This document shows, piece by piece, positions 3 through 61,551 of a DNA stretch of 64,000 nt. Both the position numbers and the translations under genes were made by a program. The notes beneath the pieces were generated by a model, which searched no databases, was not told the DNA's origin, and saw only the letters and a program-made list of their open reading frames with translations. Origin of the DNA: Octopus bimaculoides (lineage: Eukaryota); the NCBI RefSeq assembly GCF_001194135.2, contig NC_068997.1, forward strand, positions 3,521,669 through 3,585,668, written 5' to 3'. Each line of letters starts with the position of its first letter. Position 1 is the first letter of the stretch.

Positions 3-3000
3 CCAACAACAACAGAGCCAACAATAACCACTCCAAAACCAGTAACCACAACAAAAGCAACAGCGACCACAACAAAAGCAGGAATAATAACAGCAGAGCC
101 AACAACAACCACAACAGAACCAAGAAGTACCACAACCAAGTCAACAACAACTGCACTAAAACCTAGCATAACCACAGCAGAACCAACACCAACCACAACT
201 GAACGAACAACAACCATAGCAAGGTCATCAGCTACAGCCACAACTCAGGAAACAACACCAAAACCAATAACAACCGCAACTATCACAAGAGGACCAACAA
301 CCACCAGAACACAACCAGTAACAACCACAACTGAACCAACAACGACTACAATAGAACCAGCAACTACCGCGAGAAAACTAACAGCAACTGAACCAAAACC
401 AACAACAACACAACAAACGACAGCCACACCAGGACTATCAATAACTTCAATCACAACAGAATCAACAATGACAATAGAACCAGCAACAAGCACAACAGAA
501 CCAACAACAGACATAACACTATCGACAACCACACCAGATCAATTAATATTTACACATGTACCAACAACAACAAAGGCACAAAGTACATCACCACAAACAA
601 CAACAACAACAATCACACCAGAACCTACAACTACAAAAACAATACAAAGATCAACCACGACTCATCCAACCATAACCACAGCAGAACCAACAACCACAAT
701 ATCACCAATAACATCAATTATAAGCGAACCAACAACCACAACAGGACCGACACCAACAACCACAATCTCAAAAACAACAACAACAAACACAAGTTCACCA
801 ATAATAACCACCGAAGTACCAACACACACAGCAACAGGACCAACTATAACATCACCAAGGGCAATTGCCACAGCAGAACCGGTATCGAGTCCAACAAATC
901 CAACGTTATCATCCATAAAAGAACCAGCAACAACCGCAAGAGATCGAACCTCGACCACAACAGAAGCAACTTCAACCAAGGCAGCACCAATTCCAGCAGC
1001 CACAACTGAACCAGCAATAACAACAACGTTTCCAACAACGACCACTGCAACACCAACAACGACAACCACCAAATTACAAACAAAAACAGAAACAATACAA
1101 ACAATAGCAACGTCCCCACCAACCACGACAGCATCACAACGAACAACAACAAATATGAGAGCACCAGCATCAACATCAATAGAAACAACAACGTCCGAAA
1201 CATCCCCAATAACATCCACAAAAGAACCTATGTCAAGCACAATAGAACAAGTAATAGCAACTACAACTTTACTAACAACATCCGCAACAGAGCCAACAAC
1301 AACATTCACGAAAGAACAAACAACAACAGCTACAATAGAAACAGCCACGGCCAAAACATCACCAAGAGCATCCACAATAGAACCAACACAAACCACAAGA
1401 GAACTTACAGTATCAACAGTCCCGACTACAATAACAACGACATTAGAACCAGCAATAACTACCACAAGTTTATCTACAAAGACAATGCCATCAACAATTA
1501 CCACTACTAAGCCAGCTATAAGAACTATGGAAGGAACAATAACAGCTGAATCATCAACAGCAACACCACCATCAACAACAACAACAGAACTAACATTTAC
1601 CACGCGAACAGGAACAAGAACAAGAACAACAGTGCCGACAGTAACCGCAGAAACAACAACGGAAGCAGTAAAAACCGCCGCAGAACTAAATACGATAACC
1701 GCAAAAGAGCAAATAACTACAACCGAATCACCATTAGAAATAACTGCAACACAAACAAAAACGACATCAACAAACACAATCGAACCAACAACAACCACAA
1801 CAGAAACCACATCAAAATCACTACCAACCACAGCCAAAACAGAACCAACAACAGAATTGCCACGAACAACAAGCGCAATTCAACAGACAGCAACTGCAAT
1901 GGGACCCCCAACAACAATGGAATCCACAATAACAGCATTTCTACGAACGAAGACCACCACACAACCAATATCCACCAGAAGATCGGAAACACCAACACAA
2001 ACCATTGAACTAACAACAGCACCAACTGCAGCAACAACATCAACTGGGTCCACAATACGCACAACAGAACCGTCAACGATGTTATCACAACCGACAACTA
2101 AAACTATGAAAAAATCTACATCCGAACCAATCACGGCAACCTCTTCACCTGCAGCAAATACAAAACAATCAATAACAAGCAGAACAGAACCAACAGCAGT
2201 TACACCTGAGCCAATAACAACAAAGACAACAGAACCTATTACATTAACAGAGCGAACAACGACAACCACAACAGCACCAACAACAATTACAATAGAACCA
2301 ACAAAAAGAACACCACCAACAGCAACCCCAACACATCCAATAATAACAACTCTATTAAGAACAACAGCACCACCAACAACAACCACACCCGATCGGACAG
2401 CAATCACAACAGTACCACAATCAACAGCCACAACAGAACCAACGACAGCCTCACTAGAACTAACAACGACAACCACAACAGAACCAAGAATGCCATCACC
2501 ACCAAAAGCCACCATAACAGCAACAATCTCAAACACAACACCAAGTGCAACGTCAACAACAAGCTCAAGAGAAACATCAGCGACAACATCACAACCAACA
2601 TCAACTGCAACAGCTCAAAGAATGATAACAACAATACCAACAACTAGAACATCTCCACCTTCAGCAACTTCAACAGGACCAGCAACAACTGCTAGAGAAC
2701 CAACAACTCCAATAACAACCACAACAGATCAAACAACAATCACGAAAGCTCCAGCAACAATAATCCCAACAGGACCAACAACGGCCATAACCGAACAACC
2801 GGCAACAAGCGCAACAGGACCAAAATTTACAAATGCATCTGAAACAACAACAACAGAAACAGAACCAATAACTGTTGCATTATCAACAACGACTACAACA
2901 AAAACAACATCTCCGACAACAACCATCAGAACACCAACAACAACTAGAACATCACCAACGATAACAACCACAAGAAAACCAACAAAAACAACAGCAAGAG

Positions 3001-6000
3001 AACCAACATCTACAAACAAATCAGTAACAACAACCAATGAAGAAACAACACCAACTCCAGCAAAAACGAAAGCAAACCTTTCCACAGCACCACCTGCAAC
3101 AACTACAACAAGCACAAAAGAACCCTCAACAACGTCATCACAAATAACAACCGTGCCAAAAACCACCACAGAACCAACAACAACCACAGCAGAACTAACA
3201 ACCACAACTATAACAGAAGCAGCAACCACAATCACAACGAAACCAAGAGACGCATCCACGACAGAAGAAAGAGCAACCACAGTCACAACACAACCAATAG
3301 CAACCACCACAGAACTAACAACAACCACATCACAAACATCCACAACACAAACAAGAACCACCACGGAACCAACCACCACAACAACAGAAACAAAAACCGC
3401 AATCACATCAGAACCAACAACCACAACAGGACCAACAACCACAACAGGACCAACAACTACAATCACAACAGAGCAAACAACAACCACAACAGAACCAAAA
3501 TCTACAGCAGAACGAACAACAACCACACCAGGACCAATAACCACAATCACAACAGTACAAACGACAATCACAACAGAACCAAAAATCACAACAGAAATAA
3601 AATCCACAACAGAACCAAAGACCACAATCACAACAGAACCATCTACAACTAAAGCAGGATCAAAATCCTCAATCAAAACAGACCAAATAACAACCACCAC
3701 AGAGCCAACAACAATAACAACAACGGAAGCAACAACCACAACACAAGCACCAACAACTGAAACAGAACCAACAACACCCCCAACAGCACAAACAACCACA
3801 ACACCAACACCCACAGCACAAACAGCAACACCCACGGAATCAACGACCAATACAATAGAACCAACAGCCACAATCACAACAGAAGCAACAACAGCTAGAA
3901 CACAAACAACAACCACCACAATAGTACCAACAGCCACCATCACAACGCAACCAGGCACAACAACAGCACAAACAACAGCCACAACAAAAACAGCAACGAC
4001 CACAGAACTGGCAACCACCCCAACAAGACCAACAACTAAAATCACAACAGGGCCAGCAATCACAAGACCCACAACCACAATCACATCACAAGAAACAACC
4101 ACAACAGCAACCACTACAGAACTGACAACAAACACAACAGAGCCACCAACCACAACCACAGCAGATCGGACAACAGCCACCATAGAATCAATTACAAACA
4201 GACTAGTTCCAACAACCACATTAGAACCAACATTAACAACCGCAACAAAACCTACAATAACATCACAAGCAACAACCACAACAAAACCAACAACAACAGC
4301 TACAAAAGCAGCACCAACTCCAACCTCAAAATTAAGCACTAAAGAACGAGTGTCAACAACTACAAGGGAACCAACAACAACCACAACACAACAAACAACT
4401 CCAACCATCTCTGGACCAACCTCTACCACAACTGCAAGCACAACACCTACCACAACAGAAGCAACAACAACCACAGCAACATCAACACCCACAATATTGC
4501 ATACCACAACTCGAATGTCACCAACTAAGTCACGTACAACTGAAGCAAACACACCCATAGCGCATTTAGCCTCTACGGTTAGATACGAAACATCCAGCAA
4601 CCTTGAAACAGCTACTGTCACAACAGGAGAAACTTCTCTACCATCGACAGGTACAGGCTCATTAGAATACAAACAAACACCTTCTATTACAACACAGAAA
4701 ACATCAGGTACACAAGATCTAACATCTTCAACCGTTACACTTTCATCTGTAGATGAGACTTCAGAATTTTCCACACACGAAGAATCATCAAACTTAGCAT
4801 TCCCTAATTCTCTTCCACCGACTCCGTCTACAGAAATGTATACGTCTCAACACATTACGGAAGACTTTCCGAAGCATTCCACAAAATTTAGCATTCCAAC
4901 CAACATGACACAAGGACCATCTAGAACCACTACACACATCCCTACATCACAAACAGCAGCAGCAACAAAAAATAAGAATACGGCAACTACACCAACTACA
5001 TCACAGACAACAGCAACAACAAACCTCACTACTACACCAACAACTACATCACAGACTAGAGCAACAACAGACATCAATATAACACCAACAGCTACACCAG
5101 AGGCTACAGCAAAGACAGACATCACTACAACACAAGGAGTAACAGAAATTGCAACAAGCACCGCGAATACACCGGCAACTACATCACAAGCTACAGGCAC
5201 CACTGTTACACCAACCACTGCATCACGAACCACAGCATCAACAGACACCACAGCTACACCAAAGTCATTACAGACAACAGCAACAACAAACCTCACTACT
5301 ACACCAACTACATCACGAATTAAAGCAACTAGAAGCACCACTACCACACAAGCAAGTACATTAGAAACTATGCTAACAACAGGCACTACTAGCACACGAA
5401 CAACTACACCACAAAGTACAGCAACAACAGACATCACTACTACATTAACAACTACAGCCAAGACAGTCACGACATCCACTACATCACAGTCTACAAAAAC
5501 AACAGACAGCGCTATTACACCAACAACTACAACACAAGCCACAGCTATGCCAGACAAATCTATGACTCAGACAACTACATCACAAACTGCAACAGTACTA
5601 GGCATTATTACTGCACCAGCAACTATATCACAAACAACAGCAAGAACAGGCACCACTACAACACCAGTAAATACTTCACAAAGTACAGCAACAACAGACA
5701 AAACTTCAACACCAGCAACTACATCACAAACAACAGCAAAAATAAGCAACGCTACTACACCAACAACATCCCAAATTAAAGCTACAACAGGTACTACGAC
5801 TTCTACTTCTACTACTAAACCAGATACTACATCACAAACTACAGCAACGGAAGTCACTACTACCACACAAACAACTACACAAGAAACTACAATAACAACT
5901 GGCGCTACACCAGAAACTACAGCACAAACTACAGCAACAACTGAAGCTTCTATGTCAGAAACTACACCTACTACACCACAAACTACAACAACAGCAAGAA

Positions 6001-9000
6001 CCACTACTAAACCAGTAACTACATCACAAACCACAGCAACAGAGGACACTACTACCACACAAACAGCTACACCAGAAACTACAGCAACAACAGGCGCTAC
6101 TACTACTACACCAACAACTACAACACAAACTACAGCAACAACAAACCTCCCTACTACAGTAGTAACTACATCACAAGCTGCCGCAACAACAAGTACTACT
6201 ACTGTACCAAGAATTACATCACAAACTACAGCCACAACAGGCACCAGTCCAACACCATCGACTACACTACAAACAACAGCAACAGCAGATAGTAGTACTA
6301 CTACACCAGCAACTACATCAGAAACTACACCTACAACAGGCAGTAATACAACACCAACAAATACACCACAGACTACAACACCAGGAGCCACTAGTACACC
6401 TACAACTACATCACAAACTACGCCAACAAAAGGTACCACAATAACACCAACAACTACACAAACTACAGTAATAGTGAGTACCACTACCTCGCCACTCACT
6501 ACAACGCAAACTACAGCAACAAGGGGAACCACTACTACACAACCCGCTACAATACAAACTACTGCAACAACAAGTATCATTACTGCACCAGCAACTACAT
6601 CACACACTACATCGTCAACAGGCACCACTAGTACATCAGCAACCACATCAGAAACTACACCAACGGCCGGCACCAGTGCCATGCAAACAACTACACCACA
6701 AAGTAAAGTAACAGCAGGCACCATTACTACGTCATCAACTACATCACAAACTGCAGCACCAACAGATACAGATATTACTCCAGCAACTACATCACAAGCA
6801 TCAACAAGAGCAGACACTACAACCGCACCAACAACTACTTCAAACACCACAGCAACGCCAGGTACCATTACAGCACCAGCAACTACGACACAAACTACGA
6901 CAATAACAAGTACAACTACCACAGACACAACTACACCGCAAACTACAGGAATAGCAAATATTGCTACCACACCTCCAACTACATCACAAACAACAGCAAC
7001 AATAGGCATCACTACTACACCAGCAACTACATCACAAACTACAGCAACAGCAGGCACTACTATTACACCAGTAACTACAGGTAGTATTATTACACCAGCA
7101 ACTACTTCAGAAACAACAGCATCAGCAGGTACCACTAGTACATCAGCAACTACATCAGCAACAACAACAGACAGTACTATGTCATCAATTACATCACAAA
7201 CTACAGCATCGACGGATACAACTATTGCACCAGCAACTACATCACAAACATCAACAACAACAGACACTCCTATCACACCAGCAACTACTTCACAAACCAC
7301 AGCAGCGGCAGGCACTATTACAACACCAACAGCTACACCACACACTACAGCAACAACGGATAGAACTACTACCCCAGCAACTACATCACAGACATCAACA
7401 AGAACAGGTGCACCTACCACACTAGCAACTGTAACACAAACAGCAGCGACAAATGGTACCAGTAATACACTGACAATTACACCACAAACTACACCAAAGA
7501 CTGCAGCAACAGCAGGTACTACTACTACACAGCCCACTACTACACAACCCACTGCACTACATACTACAGCAACAATAGGCACAACAACTACACTAGCAAC
7601 TACATCACAAACTACAACAACAGCAAGCACTACTACCACAAGAACAACTACACCAGAAGGTATAGAAACAGCAGGTGCCACTACTACACCACCCACTACT
7701 CCACAAACTGCAGTAACAAAAGCTAAAACTACTATACCAGCAACTAGGTCACAAACCACAACACCAGCAGGCACCACTATTACACCAACAACTGCATCAC
7801 AAAGTACAGCAACAACAGGCACCACGACTACACCAATGATTACACCACTAACTACGCCAGCAACTACATTACAAACTACAATATCAGCAGACATTACTGC
7901 AACCCCAGCAACTACACCACAAGCTACATTAACAACACTCATAACTACGACACAAGAACCTACATCACAAGAAACTACGTCATACACTGCACCAACAGCA
8001 GACACCGCTTCTATCTCAAGTACAATATCAAAAACTACATCAGCAACAGCGATCCCAGTTACACCAGCCACTTCATCACACTTGAAACCAACAACAAGCA
8101 CCACTAATACACCAGAAACTATGCCACAAACTACATCAACAGCAGCTACCACGCCTAGGCCCACAACTACATCACAAACTACAGCAACAACTAGGTCTGC
8201 TACCACACCAACCACTTCATCACAGTCTAAAAGAACAGTCTCAACCTACTCACCGAGCATTACATCACAAGCTTCATCAACCATAGACACCGCTACTACT
8301 GTATCACAAACTGCAGAAACAACATACACGACATCTAAACCATCATTATATATTACACCGAAAACATCCTCATCTACTCTTCCTCAGCCACCGTCCACTG
8401 GGACACAAATATCTTTAAAATCAGCAACTCCTCCACCAACATTTGTCTCTGTTTTTTCATCAGCGACCCTTGTGCCACGAACGTCCTCACTTTCACAGTC
8501 TAGGTTTCACTCCACCTCTACTACCCCGCAATCAGAATCTGTTACAATGTCACCAACAAGTTCGACGAGTGTGTCATCAACATTTTATAATACACTCATG
8601 CCGAAAACTAAAGTGGTGAAGACCTCTACTACTTCCCAACCCATTCCTAACGCTGCTTCTGTAACACCTACAGCCGGACCACCTGTCCATACAAGTACAA
8701 CGGCTACATCTTTGTCATTAGAATCTACAACTGCAACCACAACGTCTGCAACTCCTCTATCAGTATCGAACTCTGTAGTAACACCATCAACCAGTCATCT
8801 ATCAAATACTGAGGATAGCCTAGAAAAGCTGAACGAAAATAGAAAATCCCCTTCAACGCCAGTTACGATGTCTAGCAAGGAGATACTGACAGATCATACA
8901 TTGCCAACCATTACAAAGGTGTTATTATATACAAGAAAGAAAGCAATGACGATTAAAGGACACCAGAACATAACATTTCCGACCGAAAGGGTAGTAACTA

Positions 9001-12000
9001 ATCAGTTAATGACATCTGGCAAGGAGCCACAAACTACACCACCAACAACAATAAACGGAACAGCAGAAACGACAGTCATGACAGAAAAGGCAATAAATAT
9101 AACAGAGCCAACAACAGAGTCAACAGAAACAACATCACAAAAAATGACAACCACAACGGAACCAACAACACTAGACGTAACAGAAACAACATCAACCGCT
9201 GCACCACTAACAAAAGCCATGACAGAGCAAACAAAGACCTCAACAGAACTAAGAAGAACAATACTAACAATCAAAACAGCCACAACAGAAACAACAACGA
9301 CAGCGGAACCGACAACAATCAACGTAACAAAAATAACAACGACAACAATACCAACAACAACTACTACAGAATCAACAACAGAAACAACAACAACCACGAC
9401 ACAATCAGCAACAGATCTAATAACAACACAAATAACAGAATCAACAACACCATTAACAACAGAACGAATAGCAACAAACACAGCAGAACCAACAACAATC
9501 ACAATTGCGCCAACAACGACACCGGAACAAACAACATTAAAAGAGCAAACAACTTCCAGAGCAGAACTAACAACGACCACAGCGAAACCAACAACAGCAA
9601 CAGAAGGAACAATAACTACTTCAAGACCAATAACAACCGCTACAGAACCAACAATAATAGCTACAACCTCAACACAGTTAATTACAAATGTAACAGGATC
9701 ATTAACAACGAAAACAAAACAAACTTCAAAACAGTCAACAACACAAACCACAACAGAAGCTATAACAACTACCACACCAACCAATATATTTACAACGGAT
9801 TTCACAAAACGGGCCACAACACGATTAGCATCAGCAAAAGATTCAATAACAGCAGCAATAAATAAAACATCAAGAACAACAACCACATCACAACCAACAA
9901 TGAAAACTGCAACCGAACAAAAGACAACTACAAAAGAACCGACAACAACCATAACAGAATCAACAACAACCATAACGGAATCGAAAACAAACAATATAGA
10001 ATTAACAAGAAACATAACAGAACAGACAGCTTCCATTACAAAACCGTCAATAACCAGAACAAAAACCAAAGCAATTACAACAAAACCGACAACAACCACA
10101 ACAGAACCACCAACAACCAAAATAGAACTGACAACTGTAAGAGAACCTACAACAACAAGGATAGAACAGACAACTACTGCAAGAGAACCAAAAAGAACCA
10201 CAACAGAACCAACAACAACCGTAACAGAACCAACAGCAACATCAGAACCAACAACAACAACAGGAGCAATAACCACTACGACAACAAAACAAATAACAAC
10301 TGAACGACCAACTACAAGCCTAACACAAACAATAACCACATTGGGACATACAACAATAAATCCAACAGCAACCACAACAAAACCAACAACCATAACAGAA
10401 CCAAGAACAGACGCACCAATAACAACCACGAAACCAACAAAAGCTACAAACCCATCAACCACAAAGCCAACAGCAACCACAAACGTATCAACAACCACGA
10501 AACCACCAACAACTACAACTGAAGCAAAAACAACCACAACAGAACCAACAACAAAATCAGTAACAACTATAACAGAACCAACGTCATCCATAAGAGAAAC
10601 TGCAACAATAAAAGCTGAACTAACAAACACCACACAAGGAACAACAGCCACAACTATAGCTATTTCCATAACAAAGGAAGCAAACATTTCCACTGTATCA
10701 CAACCAATAGTAGCAACCACAACAGAAACGACAACAACAGAACCTGTAAAAATAATTCCAACAGTACCAGCAACAACATCCACAACATTGCCAACATCAT
10801 CAACCGCAGGAGGACTAACATCAAACACATTAGGGGCAACAACACCAATATCAACTAAAACAGCCATAGCAACAGAACCAATGATATCCTTAAAAGTACC
10901 AACAATAAAAACGGCGAAAGAAGCAACATCATCAACATCAGAATTATCACCAACAACCACTACAAAACTGAGTACAATAACAACAGAACGAAAGATGTTT
11001 TCAACAGATGCGTCAACAATCACTAAACCGCCAACCACGACAACCACAACAGAACCATCAACAACCACAATAGAAGCATCATCAACCACAACAGGTGCAA
11101 CAACAACAAACAAAACACTTGAAGCACCAATGACAACAATAGTACCAACAAGGATTGCAGTAGAATCCACAACAACGACCACAACAGAACCAATAACAAG
11201 CACTACAGAACCAACAACTCCAACCCCAACAAGGCCACCACAAACGACAAATCCCACAGAACTATTAATTGCAACAAACCCAACAGAACTGGCAACGAGC
11301 ACAGATGAACCGAGAACAACCACAAGAGAATCGACAACAATCACAAAAGAACCTTCAACATTCACAAAAGAACCAACAACCACAGCAGAGCCAACAACAG
11401 CCAGAACAGAACAACCAACATCTCCAAAAGAACCAAGCACAAACATCACAACAGCAGCAGCATCAACACCATCGTCAGCAGAACCGAGAGCAACAAACAT
11501 AATAGAAGAAACAACTGTTGCAAAATCAACGACAACGAATGCAAAAGAATCAATAGCAACAGAATCAATAGTAAGCACAAGAGAACCACCAGCAACAACC
11601 ACAATTGAAGCAGTAGCAAGAACCACCACTGGACAAACAACATCCACGAAAGAACAATCAAAATCAACAGAATCATCAACAACCACAACACCCAGTAAAA
11701 CAGACCTGTTAACCACAAACATTACATATCAAACATCAACCACAACAGGACCGCTATTCAAAACTACAAATCAAACAAAAATAACCACTACATCACTACC
11801 TATATCAACAAGCACAAGGGAATCGAAAACAACATCAGAACTCGCAACGGCAATTACAACAGTTCCAGCAAGAACAACTGCACTACCAACAAATACAACC
11901 AAATATGAGTCCACCGCCATCATAGCGGAACCAACAACAACCACGTTAGGAAGAATAGCAACTACAACAGAACCAAAACCAACCACAGCAGGACAAAGAA

Positions 12001-15000
12001 CAACTACGACAGGACCGGCAACAACCACACTAGGGGTAAAAGCAGCTATGACATCAACTGCAGCTACCACAAAAGAACCAACAACAACAAAAACCATATC
12101 AAGAACAACGACAGTACCAACGAGCACTACAACAGAACCTACAAGAACGACGACAACCACAAAAGAATCATCAATAACCGCAGCAAAATCAACACCATCA
12201 AGAGAATCAACAGCTTCAACGAGACCAATTACAACAGAACCTAGAACAACCGCAATGGAACAAACAACAAATTCAAAACAACCAACATTAACTCCAACAT
12301 TACCTACAACAACGACCAAAGCATCAACGACAACTACAACAGAACCAACAACATCACTCGTAACAGAACCAGCAACAGCATCCATAACAGAACAAATATC
12401 AACTATAACTGGACCGGTATCCATGACAAAACAAGCAAATGTGACACCTACATTACAACGAACAAGCGCAGCAAGAATAGAAAAGACGACCACAAGGGAA
12501 CAAACAGCAATATCAACAGAGCCTGCGGCAACAGCAAAGGAACCAACAACATCTATCAAAGAATCAACGAAATCAATCACAACAAAACGAACAACAACAA
12601 AAACGATACCGACAACAACCACAATAGAAACGCTCAGCACTGCAGAGGCAACGACAGTAACTGCAACAGACACGAATACAAGCAAAACAGAATCAACAAC
12701 AATAATTCGAACACTAACACCAACCAGTGCAGCGGCACTAACAACAGCCACAACAGAAGTAACAAAAAGAGCAAACACAACAGAACCAACAACAACAATA
12801 CAACCTATGGTGGCCACAACAAAGCCAACAACAACATCCACAAAGGAAGTGACGGAAACAAACATAACAACAACAAAAGAGCCAACAACAACAACAACAG
12901 AAACAACAAGACCTGTATCAAAAACAAGAATCACGATAGGACCACCAAATTCAACGCAATCAATAACAACCACAGCAGAGCCAAAAACATCTATAAACAC
13001 AACAGAACCAACTACATCAACACTACCAACAATAACAATAGAAACGACAGCAAACACAACAAACAGAACAAAGACAAATACAACTAACACTGAACCCACA
13101 AAATCTGCAAAAAGAGAACCAACAACAAAAACAGTACTATCAACAACAGCTCCACTAGAACTAACAAAATCTACAGCAGAAACCACAACAACAGAACCAA
13201 CTCCAACACAGCCAACAACAAGGAAAACGCAACCAACCACAAATACACCAGAAACACCAACTACGACAGAAACGACAACAATAGCTTCAATACAGACAAT
13301 TACAACCACAGCTGAACCAACGACCACTACAATAGAAGATACAGCAACAGACACATTAGGACCAACATCCACAACAGAATCAACGGCTAAAACTACAACG
13401 GAACCCGCAACAATAACCACAAGGGAACAAACAACAGCTTCAGAGGAAACAACAACAATAATTCCAACATTAGTTACGCAAAAAAACATAAAGACATCCA
13501 CAACAGGACCGACAACAACAAACATTACACAGCAAACATCAATCACAATAGAATCGATACCCACAACAAGAAAACAAACAAAAGCAACCACTACATTACA
13601 AAGAACCTCAACCAGTGTAGAAACCGTAACAACAGCTGAATCCACAACATCAGCCACAACAGTACCAAGAGCAACAACAATAGTACCAACAACCGAAAAA
13701 GAACCCACAGCAACCAGAATAGAAACAACCAAAACAATAAACACTGCAAAGCAAACAAAGCCAACACCGATGACGACCACAGCGGAACCAACAACAAAAA
13801 CCACAATAGAACCAACGGAAACTAACATTACAGTACCAACAACAACTATGAAAGAACTAACAACAACTACAACAATACCACCACCAACAACAACAACAAC
13901 CATATCAGAACAAACAACAACGACGGAACCAACAACAACCACAACAGAAACACTAACTGCAACAGATGTAACGCCTGGATCTTCAACACGGACAAATACA
14001 ACCACAACAGAATCAACATCAGAGACGATAGAGCCAACAACAACAATCACAACAGAGTCAACATCAATAACAAAAACTGAACCAACGGTAACCAAAACAG
14101 CAGAAACACCGATCACAACAATAACTGCCCTCGCACCAAAAACAACTAAATCTGTACAAACAACAACTACAGAATCAGCTACAACAACAGGACTAAAAAC
14201 AACATATGCAGAAGGACTTACACCCACCACCGAACTAAATACAAAGATAAGAGAAGAGAAGACCCACACAACCGTATCAAAAACAACGAAGAGTGAACCT
14301 GTAGTAACCCCAACTCTATTCACAGCGCTCATGACAAAGCTAAAGAGAGTCACAACAGAAAAAGCAACAAGAATATTAGAACCAACATCCAACACTACAA
14401 GAGAAGCACCAAAAACAACAACAGAAACAGAACCAACAACAACAAAAAAGACACCAGCATCAACAACGGCCACCACCACAATGGAACAAGTAGCCAGAAA
14501 AGAACCAACAACTATAACAGATCACACAACAACCACGACAGAACCAACAACAGTCACAGTAGAAACCACAAGAATCCCAATAGAAACAACAGTCGCAACA
14601 GAACCAACAACCACAAAAGTACCAACAACACTAACAAGCACAACAGAACGAACACCAAGAACCTTAGAACCAACTGCAACCACAACAGAATCTTCAACAC
14701 AAACGCTACTATCAACAAACACACCAGAAACCAGGGCAAAGCCTACAAGTACAAAGCCAGCTACAACAGAAAAGCTAACCACAAGTCAGGAAATAACAAC
14801 AGTTACAACGGAACCAACAAGTGGACCACCACGAAGAACAGAACCCACAACGACAAAAACGGAGGCAACAAGAACAAAAGAACCAAGAACTATCGAATCA
14901 ACAATTTCACATAAAGCACTGACAACAATAGCAATGCCATCGACAATAACCCCAGAACCACCATCAACGATTGAAGCTTTCACAACTGCGGGCACAGTAT

Positions 15001-18000
15001 ATACTACGGAACAAGCAAGTAGTTCTGGTCCGACAGCAAATACTACAGTAATATCAACAAGTTCTAAACAACCAGCATCAATCCTAACTGGTCTAAATGG
15101 TACTACAACAGAACAAGTTACAATTAATACACTACCTACACAAACTATTCTGCAAACTAAAGATATTACAATATCGACTTTGAGCACAGAAGAGTCAGCA
15201 ACAAATAACGAAGCAATAACAACTAGGAAACGAACAACAGCAGCAACAGAAACACCAATGTCGTCAACAATAAATACAACCCAATCAAAACCAACAACTT
15301 CACAACAGACAACTGCTACAATATCGCTGACAAGCAATGTGCAATCAAATGCAAACACAACACTTGCATCACTAGATACAACAATGACTGCAAAAGAAAT
15401 AACAACCACTAAAGAATCCACAACAGTTTCCTCAGAAACATCGGTAGATGTACCAACGTCCGCAACATTTCCAACAATCAACATGGATAAAACAACAGAA
15501 GACCAGGCATCCATAAACAATACACAGCAAATATCTAGCGGTACTATGTCAACAGCAGTTACACTAGAACCAATAACAGATACTGCACCTCAAACAAGTA
15601 AAACAAGAGAGTTAGGTAAAGCATCGGGTATGACACTACCAGCAACGACAACAACAATAGCAGAACCAATAACATCCGCAACAAAAACAACATACACAAC
15701 AAAAATAATCACAACAGAACCCACAGCACAAACAGAACCAAAAACAACCACAGTTGAATTAACAAGTGCAAGAGAAACTAACACCACAATCCCAACAGAA
15801 CCCACAAAATCCACAAGAGAACTGCCAACAGCATTCACAACAGAACCAGCAACAACAGCTACAGCAGAACCAACAACAGTAACAACAACAACAACAACAA
15901 CCACAACAGAACCAACAACAGCAACAACCACAACAGAACCGACACGAACAACAACAACAACCACATCAGAGCCAACAAAAACAACAACAATAGAAGCAAC
16001 TGTACCAAACATAACAAAACCGACAACAAAAACCACAACAGAACCGACAGCAACATTCACAACAGAACCGACAAGAACGATCGTAACAGAACCAGCGACA
16101 ACAGCAACCACAAGACCAACCACAACAGAACCGACAACAACCACAACTACAATAATCACATCAGGACCAACAACAACAACCACAACAGAAACGACCACAA
16201 AGCTCACAACAGACTCAACAACAATAACAAGAGGACAATCAACAACAAAAACAATAACAGAATCAACAGCAACAGCGACAAAACCAATAATGTTGACAGC
16301 AGAACTAAGCAAAACTTCATCAGAACCAGTAACAAACATAATAGAACCAATAACATCCACCAGAGAACTAACAACCACAGCAATAACAGCTACAACCACA
16401 GCAAATCCAACAATGCCAATCACAACAGAAACAGCAACATCTACAAAACCAACAACAGCATTAAAGGAAGCATCAACCTTCGCAGAAACAATAATACCGA
16501 CCATAACGGAACCAACAGCTACAAAAGAACCAAGAACTGCCCAATCAACATCGAGTGCACATGTGCCAATAACAACCATGATGCTACCCTCGACTATAAC
16601 TCCAGAACCACCATCAACGATAGAAACGTTCACAACTACCGATTCAGGATACACCACAGAACAAACCAGCAGGACTGGTCAGACAGCAAACACAGCATTT
16701 ATTTCAAGAAGCAGTGGACAGCCAGCATCAACAACCATAACTGGTCGAAATGTTACTACAACAGAACAAACTACAATCCATGCATTACCTACACAAACTA
16801 TCCTGCAAACTAAAGACATAACAATATCAACTTTGAGCATAGACGAGTCAGCAACAAATAACGAAGCAAGAACAATAACTAAGGAAGGAGCAACAACGGC
16901 AACAGAAACACCAACACCAACAACAATGAATACAACACAATCAAAACCAATTACTTCACACCAACCGTCTGCTACACTACCAGTGACAAGCACTGTGCAA
17001 TCAAATGCAAACACAACACTAGCATCACTAGATACAACATTAGTCGCGAGGAAAACATCCACTAAACAATCCACAACAGATTCTTCAGATACATCAGCAG
17101 AAGTGCCAGCGTCCACAGCATTTCCAGCAACAACTATAAGACGACCAACAACTACAAAAGATGCGACAACAACCACCTCGGATAAAACAACAGTCAACCA
17201 GCCGTCCACAAACAATACACGCCAAATGTTGAATGGTACAATGTCTACAACAGTTACGCAACAACCGATATCAAATACTACACTGCAAACTACGATGACA
17301 GGAGAATCGGGTAAAACAATTCGTACAAGAACATCAGAAACAACAACAGAACCGACAACAATCACAGCGTCACCAAATACAACTGAACCGGCAGCAACCA
17401 CGCTGGTACTGACAACATCCACACCAGAAACAAATGCAGCAGTAGCTTCAACAACAGATGCAGAAGGAACAAATCATACTACCGAAATAAACGTAAGCAC
17501 AACAGATGCGAAGGCCTCCACCACTGTACCAAAAACAGCGAATAGTACACCTGTAGTAACATCGATCCTACTCACAGCTCTCATGACGAAGATAAAAGGA
17601 ATCACAACAGAACCAACAAACACAACAACTGAAGAAATAACCACAAAGACAACACAAGCAAGAACAGCCACATCTGAATCAACAACTACAACAGAATCAA
17701 ATACAGCAACAGAACCAATAGCAATAACAACAACAACAAAGCCCAAAACAACAACAACAACGACAACAGAATCAAAAACCACAACAACAGAACCAACAAC
17801 AACGGCAACAGCACCACCGACAACAACAACAGAGCCAATAGAAATCACAACTGCGTCAAAGTCAACAACCGAACTAACGACAGCTACAATAAAAACAGAA
17901 CTAATACCAACAACAATAACCGAACGAACAACAACAACCATTACACAACCAATGAAAATTACAACTGAACCTACGTCAACCACAACACAAAGAACAACAA

Positions 18001-21000
18001 GCACAACTGAACCAACAACAACAGCAGTACCAATAACAACATCGCAACTAGTAACAAGCACAACAGAATCAAGAACAATAACAGTTCAGACGTCGACACG
18101 AATAGAACCAATAACCGCCACAACACAACAAGGAACGACCTCAGCAGAACAAGCCACGGCAAAAACTACAGCACTACCAACAACAGCTTCAGCAACAACA
18201 GCTTCAGCAACAACAGCCTCCATAGCACAATTGACAATTGCCTCATTACACACCAAAACTACAAGAGGAATGACTTCAGGAATAGCTCCAAATGCAACCA
18301 TTATGTTGCCAACAACAAACAAAACAGAGTCAATAACATCTTCATCACAAACAACAACAGTCACAAGAGGATTAACATCAGACACAGAATCGACAAGGCC
18401 AACAGCAGTCACAAGAATACAAACAACGCCAACAGCAATACTTGTAGAAAGCACAACTATACCAAGAACAACAACAGAACAAAAGCGATCCACTACAGAA
18501 CCAAAAACAACCACAGCAGAACAATCTACATCAGACATGACAGAAAAAACAACCACGGGAGAAGCAACAAAAGCAATCAAAATAGTACCACCAACAACTA
18601 CTACTGCACAACCAACAACAGCAAGGACTACAGAACGAAAAAGACAACCAACTGCAGCGACTACAGACTCTAAAATATCTACTTCAGAACCAACAACAAA
18701 TACGACAGAATCAGCAATAAAAATAGTATCAACAAAGATAAGGCAAACAACTTTAACACCATCAACATCAACTACAACCACTGTAGTACAGCGGTCTAAT
18801 GGAACCGACAAAGCAGCCACAACAGAAATTCCACTCAGAACTGCAACCATAAGAGAAACAACAACGACGATTACAAATCAAACAGCAAGCAGAGAAGTGC
18901 CAACAGCAGACACTATACACTCCACAACAACCACTGATTTGCCATCAATTCCAACGGCAGGACACAAGACAAAAAGTACACTAACTACAGGGGAGTCAAC
19001 AGCACAGCAAAACACTGCAAACAATACAGTAGATGCAATAACGACAACAACAGTAGAAGCAGACACAGCAACTACAACCGAAAAGGAACGCACAACAGCA
19101 ATCAGGAGAGAACCAACAATAACAACAACAATGATAGACAAGACAGTAACAACAAACGTAACACAACAAGCATCAATACACACAACACAACCAACAGCAA
19201 AAACCACAACACGACTAACAACAACAACAACAGTACCACCAAAAAACATAACAGAACCAACAACAATCACAGGAGAAACAACTTCAATAGCCACAAGAGC
19301 GCCAACAGCAACAACCACAAATATACCAACAAAGAGAAATACAACGGTACCAACAACAAACACAACAGTACTATCAAGAATAATCACAGGTGTGCCTAGA
19401 ACGAACACAACAACAATACCAATGCAAACAACCACAACAACAATCCCTACAGTTCGATCAACGAACAAAGCAGAAACATCAACAACAACAACAGTACCAG
19501 TAGCTGAAACAGAGCGAACAACATCAACAACAATCCCAACAGTACCAGAGACAAAACTTATGACGGAAACAACAAAATTAAGCACGTCGAAAACAGAAAC
19601 AACAACAGAACCGACATCAAACGCAACAGTACCATCAGAAGTACTCACTTCAATGTCGACAACAAACAAAACAGAAGCAACAATGGCAACAGAATCAATC
19701 ACAGCAAACTCGATACCAACAACAAAGCCAAGAGCAACAACAAGACCAAAAACAACAACAAAACCAACAAAAATAGCAACAAAACACGCAACATCCACAA
19801 CAGAACCAACAACGATTACAACAGAACCAAAAACCACAAAAGAACCAACAACTACAACACAAACTACAACCACAACAAAACCAACAACCACAACAGAACC
19901 AATAACCACAACAGAACCAACAACCACAACAGAACCAAAAACCACAACAAAACTGACATTAACTAGCACAGCACAACCAGAAGCAATCACAACAGAACAG
20001 ACAACAATATCAACAAAGCCAATCACAACCACAACAAAACCAACAACAGTAACAACAAAACTAACAACGACCACAACAGAACCAACAATAACAAAACCAA
20101 CAACAACCACAATAGAATCAACAACTACAACAGAACCAGAAGCAACCACAACAAAACCGAGAAGAAGCACAATAGAACCAACAGCAACAACCACTACAGA
20201 ACCAAGAACGACCACAACAGAACCAACAACAACCACTACAGAACCAACAACGACCACAACAGAACCAACAATAACCACAACAGAACTAATAACAAGTAAA
20301 ACGCAACCTAAAACACCCGGCGGAGAACCAAAATCGTCCACAAGAGAAACAACAACCATAGTACAACCGAAATCAACCACTGCGCCAGCGGCAACGACTA
20401 AAGAACAAAGACGAGAACCAACAACAACACTAGAAGCAACAATGACAACAGAACAAGCAGCAACTATGACAAAAGGAAGAACTACAACGCAACCAGCAAC
20501 AACCACAACGGAACCAATAACAACATTAAGAGAATCAATTACAACAGTAGAAACAACAACAACAACACAACCAACAACATCAGCAGAGCAACCACAAGCT
20601 ACAACAGAACTAACAATAACCAAAACACAGCCAACATCAGCTACAACAGAACAAGCGACCAGAACAGCAATAACAGAACCACCATCACCAACATCTGAAA
20701 AAACAGCAATCACAACAAAACCAAAAACACCCACTACAACAACAACAAAAATAGAACCAAGGAACACCACAGCAGAACCAACAACAACCTCAAGAGAACC
20801 AACATCTGTCACAACAGAATCAACAACAACCACTGCTGGACCAACAATGACAAGAGAACCAACAGCACCAGGAATAAGAACAATTATAACAGAACCAACA
20901 ACAACCACAACACAAACAACAACTGCAACAACACTAGCAACAAGCACAATAGAAGCCATAACAATACCTGAACCAAAATCAACAACATCAGAACCGATAA

Positions 21001-34390: not shown

Positions 34391-34711
34391 ATTCACACCG
34401 ATGGTTTCCTGATCATAAAACAAGATGGCTTCAAAATCAATAAATTACCGAAGAAAGATATCGGTGAACAAGATGAAGTGATCATCGCTCCGTTTTGGGC
34501 AGATGCAGTGACCAGCAAACGTTTCCCGTCCAGTGCCGTATTCTATGATGTCTATGAAATGTGGCCTCTGAAGCGCATACGTACCGAAGAAGAAAGACTC
34601 TTCCTAAATCACATCTCAAAACGGTTGAATATTTCGACCTTCCAAGCTACCTGGGCATTGGTTGTTACTTGGAGGGACCTCCGTCCTGGTGATATCCTCA
34701 ACCCGTCTGAG
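34391..34711 (+). CDS. Exon: NIDO domain (IHTDG...IIAPFWADA...FQATWALVVTW)
   Basis: tttcgtttAG acceptor, GAG|GTGAGT donor; 321 nt, phase 0 to 0; hallmark NIDO motifs IAPFWAD and ATWALVVTW. Confidence 0.93.
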
Positions 34712-36623: not shown

Positions 36624-36831
36624 AAAAATACATTCCAAGCTGTTTTGGTAACAGACGGTAGAGCCTCCTATGTCATTTATTTGTATGAAAGAATGGAATG
36701 GAAAACATTTAACTTACTCTACAGAGATGTAGTTGTAGGTTACAGAAGAGGCATAGATGACAGCAACTATTTTATGACTTCCATAAGAAACACAGATATT
36801 TTGCAGATCGACAAGATCAAAGGAAATACAG
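36624..36831 (+). CDS. Exon: NIDO domain (KNTFQAVLVTDGRASYVIYLY...KGNTG)
   Basis: atatttccAG acceptor, G|GTAAAA donor; 208 nt, phase 0 to 1; NTFQAVL.TDG..SY NIDO motif. Confidence 0.93.
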
Positions 36832-37702: not shown

Positions 37703-37956
37703 GAATTTACGGGTGGTGGCAGTTCCCGCTAGGAGTAATTAAAGAAAAAGAAAATTTCGCACAACAATGTATGAAATGGTATTACGAGAATTCGGCACAG
37801 CAGCGAATCGAAGCCAGAAAACTCTCGGCATTGAGTACACCATGTCCGTGTAATCTTCTGCAAGCTAAGAAAGACACGCGCTTTGAAATGTACCAAAATT
37901 CCAACAATTGTCTCCGCCTGATGTTTCCTACCGATGGAAAATCTAAAGGTGTCAGG
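37703..37956 (+). CDS. Exon: end of NIDO, start of AMOP (GIYGWWQF...CMKWYY...PCPCNLLQAKKDTRF)
   Basis: caattcacAG acceptor, AGG|GTGAGT donor; 254 nt, phase 1 to 0; C..WY and PCPC...QA..D.RF AMOP motifs. Confidence 0.92.
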
Positions 37957-38803: not shown

Positions 38804-39008
38804 ATCTGTTGCTATGATTATCAAACAAATGCCTTGAAACCAACTGACAGTCCATTCTTCATCAATGACCCAACAAATGCCAAAATCAAGTGGATTGAAG
38901 AAGACAAAAAACCTGTGGACGTTTGCTGTTCCTTTTCTGCTTACTGTTCGCTTTTCAATGAAGTTCGCTCTGTGTCCGATTGCAGCAATTATGTGATGCC
39001 CGTCGAAG
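38804..39008 (+). CDS. Exon: AMOP domain (ICCYD...DVCC...YCSLFNEVRSVSDCSNYVMP)
   Basis: cgaatgcAG acceptor, G|GTTAGT donor; 205 nt, phase 0 to 1; CCY and C..CC...C..F...R...C..Y.P AMOP pattern. Confidence 0.92.
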
Positions 39009-40094: not shown

Positions 40095-40352
40095 GTGGAG
40101 CCTTTGGTGACCCACATATTCAAACTATTGACGGCAAATTCTATACCTTCAATGGATGGGGAGAGTTTACCCTGCTGAATATATACCATAAGGACAAGCC
40201 CAAAGATCGCTTGTTCACTCTAGAAGGTCGCACTGAACGCGGAGAGAATGTCCACGGTGAATTGACTGATGCCACGATATTTACCGCTTTCGTCGCCATG
40301 GATTTCGTTTATAACAATTCCTTCCAGGTGGAAATAATGCAAAATAAAGAAG
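40095..40352 (+). CDS. Exon: VWD domain start with GDPH motif (GGAFGDPHIQTIDGKFYTFNGWGEFTLL)
   Basis: gtttctttcAG acceptor, G|GTATTT donor; 258 nt, phase 1 to 1; classic VWD N-terminus. Confidence 0.95.
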
Positions 40353-42288: not shown

Positions 42289-42420
42289 GTATCATCATCA
42301 TCGCCAATGGCATCGATTTCACCGTCCAGTTTGTAAATGATGAAAACTTCAACCAGTCTATGAAGTTTATGAAGCTGAAGAAACTGAAAAATGGAGGAAT
42401 TCAAGGAATATTCCAGAAAG
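42289..42420 (+). CDS. Exon: VWD domain (GIIIIANGIDFT...GIFQKG)
   Basis: tttgtattgtAG acceptor, G|GTCATT donor; 132 nt, phase 1 to 1; keeps the frame between flanking VWD exons. Confidence 0.8.
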
Positions 42421-43579: not shown

Positions 43580-43783
43580 GTTTAACCCTGAATATAAACC
43601 AAGCTAACGGAATACTGGACATAGGTGTAGCGTACCCACCCGAAATGCGTTCCGTAATGTTGACACGAGGTTTACTGGGTGTTGTAGATGGTAATCCTGA
43701 CAATGACTTCCAAGCTCCAGACGGCAGTGTGTTACCATCAAATGCCACAGAGAAAGATATATATAACCGTTTCGGTCTCCTTT
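43580..43783 (+). CDS. Exon: VWD domain (TRGLLGVVDGNPDNDFQAPDG...IYNRFGLLW)
   Basis: gtttctctaAG acceptor, T|GTAAGT donor; 204 nt, phase 1 to 1; T.GLLG..DG...NDF VWD motif. The split TGG (Trp) codon is completed by the next exon. Confidence 0.93.
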
Positions 43784-44155: not shown

Positions 44156-44401
44156 GGAAAGCACAGAAACCGTGTTTTACTTATGCCGCTGGTAAAAATT
44201 CTTCCAGCTATAAACACGCCAACTTCACTCCGAGATTTATAAACAAGGAAGAACTCTTAAGTTTAAGTGATAACGAGGCGAAACGATTTTGTCGAAATAA
44301 CATCGAGTGCTTATATGACCTCTGGACAACAAACATCAAACAATTAGCCGAAAATACCAAAATAGTCAAACAAACTGCTGAAGCCAACACAGAATTTCGA
44401 G
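44156..44401 (+). CDS. Exon: post-VWD Cys region (CFTY...FTPRF...FCRNNIECLYDLWTT)
   Basis: cttttcttcAG acceptor, G|GTAAGA donor; 246 nt, phase 1 to 1; F.Y...F.P.F...C..N..C.YD...T resembles the segment after VWD in MUC4/SUSD2-type proteins. Confidence 0.88.
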
Positions 44402-47363: not shown

Positions 47364-47571
47364 AAAATTCTCCGCCCCAAATCAAGAGTAAGAGAGTAAT
47401 GTACGCCAGTGTAGGGCTTTCTTCACGTCTGAATTTTACTGTGATCGATGACGACAACACTCAGGCATTTTTGGCAAAGCCCAGCAAGTCTCTGGAGATT
47501 TACCATGACAACCAGACCAATAAGGGATATGTGATATATACACCTGCCAGCACGGAACCTGTCAGCATTCA
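47364..47571 (+). CDS. Exon: linker, probable beta-sandwich (ENSPPQIKS...LNFTVIDDD...VIYTP...VSIQ)
   Basis: ttatttcttatAG acceptor, CA|GTAAGT donor; 208 nt, phase 1 to 2; the only candidate I found that reconciles phases between 44401 and 48296. Confidence 0.8.
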
Positions 47572-48295: not shown

Positions 48296-48450
48296 AATTG
48301 TTGTTAAAGACAGTAAGAATGCCGTGGCGCCAATCCAAGAGATCCAGGTTGTTCTCTGTCCTGGTTGTAAACATGGTAAATGTGACTTCCAGAACAATGC
48401 ACAAGAACTCTTCCACATTGTGGCATGTGACTGCGATATAGGTTACACAG
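48296..48450 (+). CDS. Exon: linker end plus first EGF-like module (CPGCKHGKC...CDCDIGYTG)
   Basis: ctctatttcAG acceptor, G|GTAAGA donor; 155 nt, phase 2 to 1. Confidence 0.9.
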
Positions 48451-49398: not shown

Positions 49399-49557
49399 GT
49401 GAGGACTGTAATGTAGACTACGATGGCTGTGCATCGTCTCCCTGCCTTGGGGAAGCTCAGTGTATTGACGTTCCAGCAGAATTACAAACATCCAACGGTT
49501 TGACTTACCGCTGTAACTGTTCAGACGGTTATAGTTTATACAACGATAAATGTGTGG
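49399..49557 (+). CDS. Exon: EGF-like (EDCNVDYDGCASSPCLGEAQCID...YRCNCSDGY...KCV)
   Basis: gtattttcAG acceptor, G|GTGAGT donor; 159 nt, phase 1 to 1. Confidence 0.93.
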
Positions 49558-50666: not shown

Positions 50667-50786
50667 ATGTTGATGAGTGTGATAGAGGTAAATCAAAATG
50701 CCAGCAGATTTGTATTAACACTCTGGGAAGTTATCAATGCGCATGCAAATCGGGATATCAGCTTTCAAATGATGTTAACTGCTACG
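50667..50786 (+). CDS. Exon: calcium-binding EGF ([31 protein letters not shown])
   Basis: atcttttacAG acceptor, G|GTAGGT donor; 120 nt, phase 1 to 1; DVDEC...C.N..GSY.C consensus. Confidence 0.95.
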
Positions 50787-52020: not shown

Positions 52021-52146
52021 ATGTGGATGAATGTAGAAGCCCCGACAATGGCTGTCAACAGACTTGTGAGAACATTGAAGGAAGTTACCAATGTGGATGT
52101 TCCGAAGGTTATAAACTTGCTAAGGACCAGAAATCTTGTGAAAAAG
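52021..52146 (+). CDS. Exon: calcium-binding EGF ([31 protein letters not shown])
   Basis: aacgtttcAG acceptor, G|GTAAGA donor; 126 nt, phase 1 to 1. Confidence 0.95.
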
Positions 52147-52906: not shown

Positions 52907-53029
52907 TCGTGGATTATTGCACCGAACACAACTTGACCAATTGTTATGGTTGCAAATTTGAGGATGGACAGATAAAATGTTTTTGTCCAGCTGGATACGA
53001 ACTCGGCCACAACAATTTTTCGTGTGTTG
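52907..53029 (+). CDS. Exon: EGF-like, non-Ca-binding (VVDYCTEHNLTNCYGC...CFCPAGYELGHNNFSC)
   Basis: ctcttgttatAG acceptor, G|GTAAGT donor; 123 nt, phase 1 to 1; six Cys. Confidence 0.92.
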
Positions 53030-53437: not shown

Positions 53438-53560
53438 ATATTGATGAGTGTGCCAGCCCAGTCCATCGATGTTCGCAGATCTGTCAGAACAAACCCGGGG
53501 GTTTCACCTGTCACTGTTATCCTGGTTACAAACTAAAACCTGATAAAGTCATCTGTGAAA
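53438..53560 (+). CDS. Exon: calcium-binding EGF (DIDECASPVHRCSQICQNKPGGFTCHCYPGY)
   Basis: taatctttAG acceptor, A|GTAAGT donor; 123 nt, phase 1 to 1. Confidence 0.95.
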
Positions 53561-54885: not shown

Positions 54886-55143
54886 AATGCGACATTTTCC
54901 ATTGGGGTGAAAACTGCAAAAACAAATGTGCATGCAATGGTAATGAAGAACTATGTGACTCAATCCGTGGCTGTGTCTGCAAGAAAGGCTGGACTGGTAT
55001 TCATTGTGACCAAGACATCAATGAATGTGCCGGCAATCACACTTGCTACGATTTTGAAAACATGAAATGCATTAATACACAAGGAAGTTACCATTGTATC
55101 TGTCAGAACGGCTACATTGATGACAGCGAGGGACACTGCATTG
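54886..55143 (+). CDS. Exon: laminin/MEGF-type EGF repeat plus cbEGF (CDIFHWGENCKNKCAC...DINECAGNHTC)
   Basis: cttcatttgcAG acceptor, G|GTAAGC donor; 258 nt, phase 1 to 1. Confidence 0.94.
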
Positions 55144-57251: not shown

Positions 57252-57252
<1 letters not shown>

Positions 57253-57720: not shown

Positions 57721-57776
<56 letters not shown>

Positions 57777-59971: not shown

Positions 59972-60011
<40 letters not shown>

Positions 60012-60347: not shown

Positions 60348-60387
<40 letters not shown>

Positions 60388-60655: not shown

Positions 60656-60787
60656 ATATTAATGAATGCAAAACTGGAGTACATTTCTGCTCGCAGAAAT
60701 GTCGAGATGTGGAAGGAACTTACAACTGTGAATGTTACGATGGTTATCGATTGAATGACGATCGAAGAACCTGTACTAAAATGTCAG
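60656..60787 (+). CDS. Exon: calcium-binding EGF ([31 protein letters not shown])
   Basis: ttatatatgcAG acceptor, G|GTAGGT donor; 132 nt, phase 1 to 1. Confidence 0.94.
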
Positions 60788-61366: not shown

Positions 61367-61434
61367 TTGTTGTTACCAATCTTGTTGTTGTTATTGTCAT
61401 ATGTTCTAATTTATTATGACCGTTGCTTTTCCAG

Positions 61435-61551
61435 AAAACGAACTCTGTAACGCTGTCAATTGTTCCCACATCTGTTTAGTTGAGAGCACCCGTCCCGTAT
61501 GTTACTGCCAAAAAGGTTTCCGATTAGCAAAGGATAAAATCACGTGTCTAT
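61435..61551 (+). CDS. Exon: EGF-like, non-Ca-binding (ENELCNAVNCSHIC...CYCQKGFRLAKDKITC); gene continues beyond the window
   Basis: ttgcttttccAG acceptor, T|GTAAGT donor; 117 nt, phase 1 to 1. Confidence 0.92.

Follow-up and report, generated by a model that had tools for sequence, protein, structure and literature searches.

The stretch of DNA analysed here (the window) covers 64,000 nt of Octopus bimaculoides (NCBI RefSeq assembly GCF_001194135.2, contig NC_068997.1, positions 3,521,669 to 3,585,668 of the forward strand) and contains 12 runs of N, six of them in the first 40 kb. The window very likely holds the greater part of a single protein-coding gene, which lies on the + strand, runs off the window at either end and encodes a giant MUC4-like mucin ("mucin-like protein") of the octopus. 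In the arrangement that we propose from the sequence, a first exon encoding a very long proline-, threonine- and serine-rich (PTS) region would be spliced in phase 1 to 19 small exons, which are predicted to encode a NIDO domain, a shortened AMOP-like region, a VWD domain with a GDPH motif, a C8-3 domain, an Ig-like linker and at least nine EGF or calcium-binding EGF (cbEGF) modules.

The contiguous part of the PTS exon (3..27220, +) consists of 9,072 codons without a single stop from base 3 to the first gap (at 27221), and the remaining two + frames of the same interval contain 554 and 153 stops. Given the base composition observed at each codon position, ~130 stops should occur over 9,072 codons, and the probability of finding none is ~2e-57; in mononucleotide shuffles the longest open stretch averages 205 codons. 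On these stop-codon statistics a chance open reading frame (ORF) was rejected. The translation of 3-27220 comprises 40.6% Thr, 9.0% Pro, 7.8% Ser, 7.8% Ala and 6.8% Glu, with neither Cys nor Trp. Codon position 2 is the phase with the strongest C in each of 180 segments of 300 nt along the PTS block, and no intron-like stretch was found among these 180 segments by codon periodicity. Taken strictly, the sequence shows an uninterrupted coding ORF of 27.2 kb, which the 5' edge of the window leaves open.

Degenerate, overlapping arrays were found in 3-27220 by Tandem Repeats Finder, with units of 18, 21, 24, 48 and 96-144 nt and 61-76% matches. The copies of the PTS repeats have diverged by ~35%, yet all indels preserve the frame; these short repeats are old and degenerate. 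The strand composition of the block is uniform from base 1 to ~32000 (GC skew ~-0.5, AT skew ~+0.6) and the skew vanishes exactly at 32011. The low complexity of the block (A 55-60%, T ~10%) and its antisense ORFs of up to 3.3 kb are what an A/C-rich non-coding satellite, poor in stop triplets, would show, and the 27-kb frame could then be a by-product of such a satellite. We consider this origin wholly improbable in view of the stops in both other sense frames, the ~130 stops expected where none is seen, the frame-preserving indels in repeats of only 61-76% matches, and the end of the frame at a consensus donor that is linked in phase to the NIDO domain. On the antisense strand of the PTS block (1-32045, minus) the open frames reach 3,285 nt, an effect of the ACN-rich codon pattern that gives no evidence of a gene. 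Within the PTS block, a non-repetitive spacer of ~80 amino acids (aa) at ~8763-9000 (SHLSNTEDSLEKLNENRK...KVLLYTRKKAMTIKGHQNITFPTERV) has a T+S+P fraction of 0.32; it is in frame and retains the codon periodicity, and no domain could be assigned to it.

Four further pieces, separated by gaps, continue the PTS exon on the + strand, each of the four having exactly one stop-free frame, which is Thr-rich every time. The piece that follows a 100-N gap (27323..28868, absolute frame 1) contains 515 codons without a stop and 39% Thr, with 33 and 9 stops in the other frames; it contains a less repetitive stretch and the beginning of an array with a 141-nt (47-aa) unit. This tandem array occupies 28881..29223 (absolute frame 2), the flanks of which are 95-98% identical to the unit and in its coding frame, as well as 29591..30072 (absolute frame 1). 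The last part (30655..32011, absolute frame 0) is made up of the end of the array and a unique Thr/Pro-rich tail, and the PTS frame ends there at the donor ATCA|GTAAGT, in phase 1, with 32011 as the last exon base. Over all pieces 10,313 PTS residues are readable, of which 58% are T+S+P and 4,984 are Ser+Thr, again with no Cys. The location of the PTS domain on one very large exon, as in MUC4, is reflected here in the 27.2-kb stop-free frame and the 10,313 readable residues. We infer from the uniform coding periodicity that the PTS block is a single exon, and a length of ~32 kb as scaffolded (30,939 nt read plus 1,057 N) is well supported. The sequence-only reading had put the exon above 32 kb and the protein above 11,800 aa, totals that include unread gap letters; what stands is at least 27.2 kb in contiguous sequence and a readable total of 10,313 + 1,164 = 11,477 aa.

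Downstream of the PTS exon, 19 exons (33030-61551) were rebuilt from stop-free + pieces and splice signals, with AG acceptors, GT donors and consistent phases; their joined product is 1,164 aa long, the length that the sequence-only reading had given, and free of stops. The phase-1 GTAAGT donor at 32011 and the 19 exons following it in frame, as read earlier from the letters, were recovered with AG/GT borders and in agreement with tblastn: when three homologs (from Ridgeia, Batillaria and Bulinus) were compared with the whole window, the high-scoring segment pairs (HSPs) were confined to the exon model and to the + strand. The NIDO domain starts in exon 2 (33030..33172, phase 1 to 0; K-LLPFG...), has its core in the 107-aa exon 3 (34391..34711, detected by Pfam) and ends in exon 4 (36624..36831, Pfam/tblastn). 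Immediately behind the exon 4 donor begins a lengthy (ATA/ATT)n run (36832-36910), which reads as poly-Ile in the exon frame and could mislead an ORF-based exon caller. Alignment and hhalign place the first half of the AMOP-like region (C..W, PCPC) in exon 5 (37703..37956) and its second half (CCY, CC, C, C.Y) in exon 6 (38804..39008, donor G|GTTAGT). The VWD domain starts with the GDPH motif in exon 7 (40095..40352), which is 47-52% identical to its Ridgeia and Batillaria counterparts, continues in exon 8 (42289..42420), which is required for phase and fits the VWD profile, and ends in exon 9 (43580..43783, Pfam/tblastn). Exon 10 (44156..44401) encodes the C8-3_MUC4 domain, and exon 11 (47364..47571) an Ig-like linker region that is collinear with the homologs.

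The EGF part begins in exon 12 (48296..48450, tblastn), where the linker ends and a first EGF-like module follows. It continues with an EGF module in exon 13 (49399..49557) and cbEGF modules in exons 14 (50667..50786; DVDEC...), 15 (52021..52146) and 17 (53438..53560), all four detected by Pfam/tblastn, with an EGF-like module in exon 16 (52907..53029, tblastn) between the last two. Exon 18 (54886..55143) encodes a laminin-type EGF and a cbEGF and is 48% identical to a Bulinus protein (P0026), exon 19 (60656..60787, tblastn) encodes a cbEGF, and exon 20 (61435..61551, donor T|GTAAGT) an EGF-like module, after which the gene runs on beyond the window. All EGF exons are phase 1-1, so that the frame is kept with or without an extra module. 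Bulinus has one additional cbEGF exon, for which no counterpart was found in 55144-60655 outside the gaps 55322-55775 and 57448-57720; it may be hidden in a gap or absent in the octopus lineage. The homologs carry more EGF modules past the position of exon 20, and no further exon was found from 61551 to the window end, a stretch that holds a gap (63001-63171) and a 117-nt exact duplicate. The two copies of this duplicate (61550-61666 and 63416-63532) lie 1,866 nt apart on either side of the gap, the first of them starting at the donor of the last exon; the pair may be redundant assembly, with a contig end or haplotype present twice, instead of a real repeat.

In the 1,164-aa product, NIDO is identified by Pfam PF06119 (E = 2.6e-23; 83 bits, cut-off 25; profile positions 2-184 of 186) and VWD by PF00094 (33.2 bits on a scan of this region by itself, with the cut-off at 22.9; profile positions 3-155 of 156), with the GDPH motif at the N-terminal start of the latter (GGAFGDPHIQTIDG). 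VWD is followed by C8-3_MUC4 (PF23263, 27.9-28.9 bits against a cut-off of 25), and the EGF families of Pfam (cEGF, EGF_CA, FXa_inhibition and EGF) match 5-6 stretches each, which amounts to at least nine EGF/cbEGF modules. NIDO, VWD and EGF of the NIDO-AMOP-VWD-EGF series proposed earlier were thereby found by Pfam, and AMOP did not hold as a full domain. In a MAFFT alignment with homologs, the interval between NIDO and VWD keeps the AMOP Cys pattern (C..W, PCPC, C, CCY, CC, C, C.Y) minus one two-Cys loop, which the closest homologs lack as well, and hhalign matches the region to a profile of six Pfam-verified AMOP segments with 96.4% probability (E = 1.3e-9, 124 columns). On account of this Cys pattern and the hhalign match, the region is classified, by its sequence, as AMOP-like and shortened. 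Membership in the SUSD2/Mesh group was rejected, as there is no match to Sushi (PF00084) and the ~250-aa NIDO-AMOP insert is absent. Membership among the gel-forming mucins (MUC2/5/6/19 type), which have repeated VWD-C8-TIL units, CysD domains in their PTS and a cystine knot at the C-terminus, was likewise rejected on the basis of a single VWD, no TIL or CK match, and no Cys in 10,313 PTS residues, the N-terminus being outside the window.

The region from NIDO to the first EGF, used as query, found only 17 proteins. The best match is a "mucin-like protein" of Ridgeia piscesae (P0001, P0002; 29% identity, 91% coverage, E ~1e-85), and the other top matches are "MUC4" of Mytilus edulis, a protein of Batillaria attramentaria and the "mucin-like protein" of Mytilus galloprovincialis; a Mytilus protein (P0003) covers 94% of the query. 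More distant matches are SUSD2-like and mesh-like proteins of corals, scallops, echinoderms and Argonauta, and vertebrate MUC4 was not among the sequence matches. The EGF part is closest to the Bulinus truncatus protein P0026 (37% identity, 100% coverage, E = 8e-106), followed by Biomphalaria proteins that include a fragment named mucin-4; a gastropod relative of this part (P0031) ends in a hydrophobic transmembrane helix and then a basic tail, KKRKK. Overall, the homologs are 27-37% identical to the octopus mucin. The MUC4 or mucin-like protein order of domains that the sequence-only reading had recognised is supported by the Pfam domains and by the names of the best homologs, which are invertebrate "mucin-like protein" and "MUC4".

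The Mytilus galloprovincialis protein (P0005) has ~190 aa of TTLETTT-type PTS sequence at its N-terminus, followed by NIDO, which allowed the intron between the two to be compared at the Mytilus locus (L001 = OZ263158.1, 10001-31869). The PTS exon ends with ...TCA G|GTATGA in Mytilus and with ...ATC A|GTAAGT in the window, in phase 1 in both cases. The next exon starts with CAG|AA TTA ATA GCA TTC GGA (E-LIAFG) in Mytilus and with K-LLPFG in the window, the phase-1 intron standing three residues ahead of a (P/A)FG motif in both. This exon is 43 aa long in Mytilus and 47 aa in the window, the following intron is in phase 0 in both, and the exon after that measures 102 and 107 aa, respectively. 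The identical position and phase of this intron in M. galloprovincialis bear out the proposed splicing of the PTS exon to NIDO, and the matching introns are, on sequence comparison, the best support for the 32011-33030 join and for the scaffolding across the gap 32155-32200. Annotation gives the Mytilus relative as two neighbouring same-strand genes, with products of 856 aa (PTS, NIDO, VWD and C8-3) and 396 aa (EGF modules only); these are probably a single gene that has been split. The relatives differ from the octopus mucin in what precedes NIDO: the PTS exon is ~0.6 kb in Mytilus versus at least 27 kb in the octopus, no such exon turned up in the 10 kb upstream of the Batillaria relative, and in Ridgeia LDL-receptor YWTD repeats take the place of the PTS. 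Given the ~0.6-kb exon of Mytilus and the result in Batillaria, the giant PTS is no trait of the family.

Several points weigh against the reading of the locus as one gene for a giant MUC4-like mucin. Exon 2 is separated from the 27.2-kb block by five gaps (27221, 28869, 29224, 30073 and 32155), and if the N lengths are taken at their nominal values the frame changes at every one but the last. The 100-N gap (27221-27320) is a conventional join of unknown length, with TTTTEP-type sequence on both flanks from which no phase can be deduced. Since the gap 32155-32200, flanked by (TG)n and (TA)n runs, lies within intron 1, between the donor and exon 2, the link from 32011 to exon 2 depends on scaffolding too. 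The donor of exon 8 (GTCATT) is the weakest element of the exon chain. AMOP (PF03782) gave no Pfam match even at E<=10, and no relative exceeds 37% identity apart from one exon-sized fragment at 60%, too little to establish orthology with vertebrate MUC4. Outside the window lie the signal peptide, any transmembrane segment and the stop codon, and expression, the 32011/33030 junction and an intron-free PTS block are to be read as predictions from the sequence.

The gaps leave room for the PTS block and the NIDO-to-EGF exons not being one exon or one gene: they could be mis-scaffolded contigs or two neighbouring genes, or introns could be hidden in the gaps, which would mean an exon of at most 27 kb and a smaller protein. 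We regard this as unlikely, since three of the gaps (28869-28878, 29224-29588 and 30073-30654) have 90-nt flanks that align on both sides with 94-100% identity to one 141-nt reference unit, and the stop-free frame is the coding frame of that unit on each side. These three gaps therefore stand for collapsed copies within one array, a young one (~28300-31600) in which the copies of the 141-nt unit are 83-95% identical. The N lengths written into it are wrong, as the 10 N at 28869-28878 must represent 87+141k nt; the young 47-aa array near the 3' end of the PTS is collapsed into gaps by short-read assembly. Also against separate genes are the uniform strand composition up to 32011 with the PTS frame stop-free before the donor, the agreement in intron position and phase with the Mytilus relative, whose annotated protein has PTS ahead of NIDO, and the finding of no HSP or ORF pointing to another gene. 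The claim of one frame through four gaps consequently has to be divided: the 27.2-kb stop-free frame stands, and literal continuity does not, the absolute frames of the five pieces being 2, 1, 2, 1 and 0 from 5' to 3', with continuity deduced instead, for three of the four gaps, by way of the 141-nt array.

Dinucleotide microsatellites border the inspected intronic gaps (32155, 39242, 48826, 50976, 55322, 57448, 61122 and 63001), typically with a (TG)n or (CT)n run leading into the gap and a (TA)n run leading out of it. Compound simple repeats abound in the introns of the mucin gene and are apparently where the assembly breaks.

The non-repetitive part of the protein was searched against 5.8 billion protein clusters, and nothing above 37% identity was found except an exon-sized fragment at 60%, with no match flagged as encoded by the window. 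The exception came from an exhaustive HMMER scan with exon 3 alone, which yielded five weak matches, all unnamed; a member of one of the clusters (P0023) is a 152-aa Logan fragment with 60% identity over 112 aa. Beyond the exact borders of exon 3 the similarity is lost, which marks the fragment as a genomic reading of a related, unannotated gene. As no relative closer than 37% except P0023 was found and none was flagged as window-encoded, the giant mucin gene appears not to be annotated in the protein collections searched, which fits a gene that annotation has missed.

The lack of any corresponding annotated protein, although Octopus bimaculoides proteins are present in the database, would also be compatible with a pseudogene or an unexpressed duplicate, in either case a decaying or silent relic, as would the Bulinus cbEGF module that has no counterpart between exons 18 and 19. 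This module could equally sit in the gap 55322-55775 or 57448-57720 or be absent from the lineage, and annotation pipelines routinely miss giant repeat exons (PMC13345508). More than 11,400 codons in 24 readable pieces show no stop or frameshift despite the ~35% divergence of the repeats, and all 20 donors and 19 acceptors are canonical. We thus judge a relic to be very improbable, less likely than separate genes, and prefer an intact gene for a giant MUC4-like mucin.

For the product of this gene we propose, by analogy with mucins and MUC4 in particular, that the PTS block would be densely O-glycosylated in the Golgi to form an extended rod or brush, ~2.5 micrometres long if ~0.25 nm is allowed per residue, which would keep an epithelial surface hydrated, lubricated and shielded. 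The VWD domain may be cleaved autocatalytically at GD|PH, in which case the mucin subunit would be held non-covalently to the subunit that bears the EGF modules, and the cbEGF array could provide a calcium-stiffened stalk or a platform for interactions.

All mucins carry one large repeat exon (PMC13345508), and MUC4 is described with NIDO, AMOP, vWD and EGF-like domains and with the GDPH site at the N-terminal end of vWD (PMC5354666). The octopus mucin is like vertebrate MUC4 in having a huge Thr/Ser/Pro repeat domain on one very large exon, followed by NIDO, VWD with GDPH, and EGF, and in having C8-3_MUC4 (PMC5354666, PMC13345508). It differs from it in the place of the AMOP, where the octopus has an AMOP-like region that is shortened by one two-Cys loop and falls below the Pfam model; in the EGF modules, of which there are three in MUC4 and at least nine, mostly calcium-binding, in the octopus; and in the repeats, which form a regular 48-nt variable number tandem repeat in MUC4, whereas the octopus PTS is mostly degenerate.

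The set for comparison among invertebrates consists of the mucin-like proteins of Ridgeia piscesae, Mytilus edulis, M. galloprovincialis, Batillaria attramentaria, Bulinus and Biomphalaria, the coral mucin-like protein, and the cnidarian mucin4-like proteins, which have NIDO, AMOP, VWD and variable PTS regions (PMC9080433). These share with the octopus mucin a collinear NIDO, shortened AMOP-like region, VWD, C8-3 and a cbEGF array that includes a laminin-type EGF, and likewise give no Pfam AMOP; the Mytilus protein further shares the N-terminal PTS and the same intron positions and phases. The difference lies in the PTS exon, which in Mytilus is as short as noted above, was not found within 10 kb upstream in Batillaria and is replaced by LDL-receptor repeats in Ridgeia. 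An older survey, as cited in PMC4948705, had placed the deepest Muc4-like protein in Xenopus. SUSD2 and Mesh share the core of NIDO, AMOP (AMOP-like in the octopus) and VWD, but have a ~250-aa insert between NIDO and AMOP, a full AMOP and a C-terminal Sushi, and neither a giant PTS nor a cbEGF array.

Coding repeat blocks of tens of kb within a single exon or gene, which short-read assemblies collapse or fragment, are common to the octopus mucin, human MUC12, MUC16 and MUC4, and Drosophila Muc14A. In Drosophila, Muc14a spans 52.6 kb, with tandem repeats in the coding sequence (PMC7108745). The differences are that MUC12 and MUC16 have SEA, that Muc14A is without NIDO-VWD, and that the octopus block is largely non-periodic and has no Cys. 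The sequence-only reading had measured the octopus exon against a maximum of 17-22 kb for human exons, a benchmark that is outdated: in long-read human assemblies the repeat exons of MUC4 reach 27,843 bp and the proteins of MUC12 23,080 aa, with an exon-length range of 55,233 bp (PMC13345508). The octopus PTS exon is not the largest known exon, and the gene is an unusually big member of a known protein family and no new kind of gene. The understanding of mucin function is unchanged by it.

What the locus does illustrate clearly is a giant repeat exon at whose youngest repeats a short-read assembly breaks and which gene finders skip or split. The MUC4-like architecture and the PTS-NIDO intron are common to a bivalve and the octopus, and the size of the PTS differs ~fifty-fold between them. 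Tentatively, and with a little less than balanced confidence, we suggest a stronger version: that the exon is one uninterrupted stretch of more than 32 kb, and probably far longer once the 47-aa array is resolved and the missing 5' part is added, that the PTS has expanded specifically in the octopus lineage, and that the gene is absent from current octopus gene sets. The lineage-specific expansion in this version is suggested by relatives that have a PTS of ~200 aa or none. If true, the exon would rank with the longest protein-coding exons recorded from any invertebrate and the protein would be the first giant mucin of MUC4 architecture characterised in a mollusc, with a Cys-free glycan rod of micrometre scale, and the PTS expansion would possibly be tied to the mucus of cephalopod skin or suckers. 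Proteomics of octopus skin mucus has reported "mucin-4-like" and "mucin-like" proteins (PMC11431876). The mucin described here could be a major structural component of the mucus on octopus epithelia; as it is seemingly missing from protein catalogues, proteomics of octopus mucus (e.g. PMC11431876) would have been unable to assign peptides to it.

Rfam and tRNA scans of the whole window gave no matches. The introns contain a SINE-like (short interspersed nuclear element) repeat of ~380 nt, which lies in four of them (40577-40957 and 54030-54399 on the + strand, 46671-47051 on the - strand, and a partial copy at 38151-38251), the copies being 91-94% identical. No tRNA-like head was detected on it by ARAGORN or Rfam, and it was not found in an 84-kb Argonauta hians locus. 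The six-frame translation of one copy, searched against the 5.8 billion clusters, matched only three proteins, all of Octopus bimaculoides (86-89% over 38-44 aa). This points to an Octopus or a close relative as the source, in line with the cephalopod origin guessed in the sequence-only reading, and suggests that this repeat has been taken into exons in the gene set of the species.

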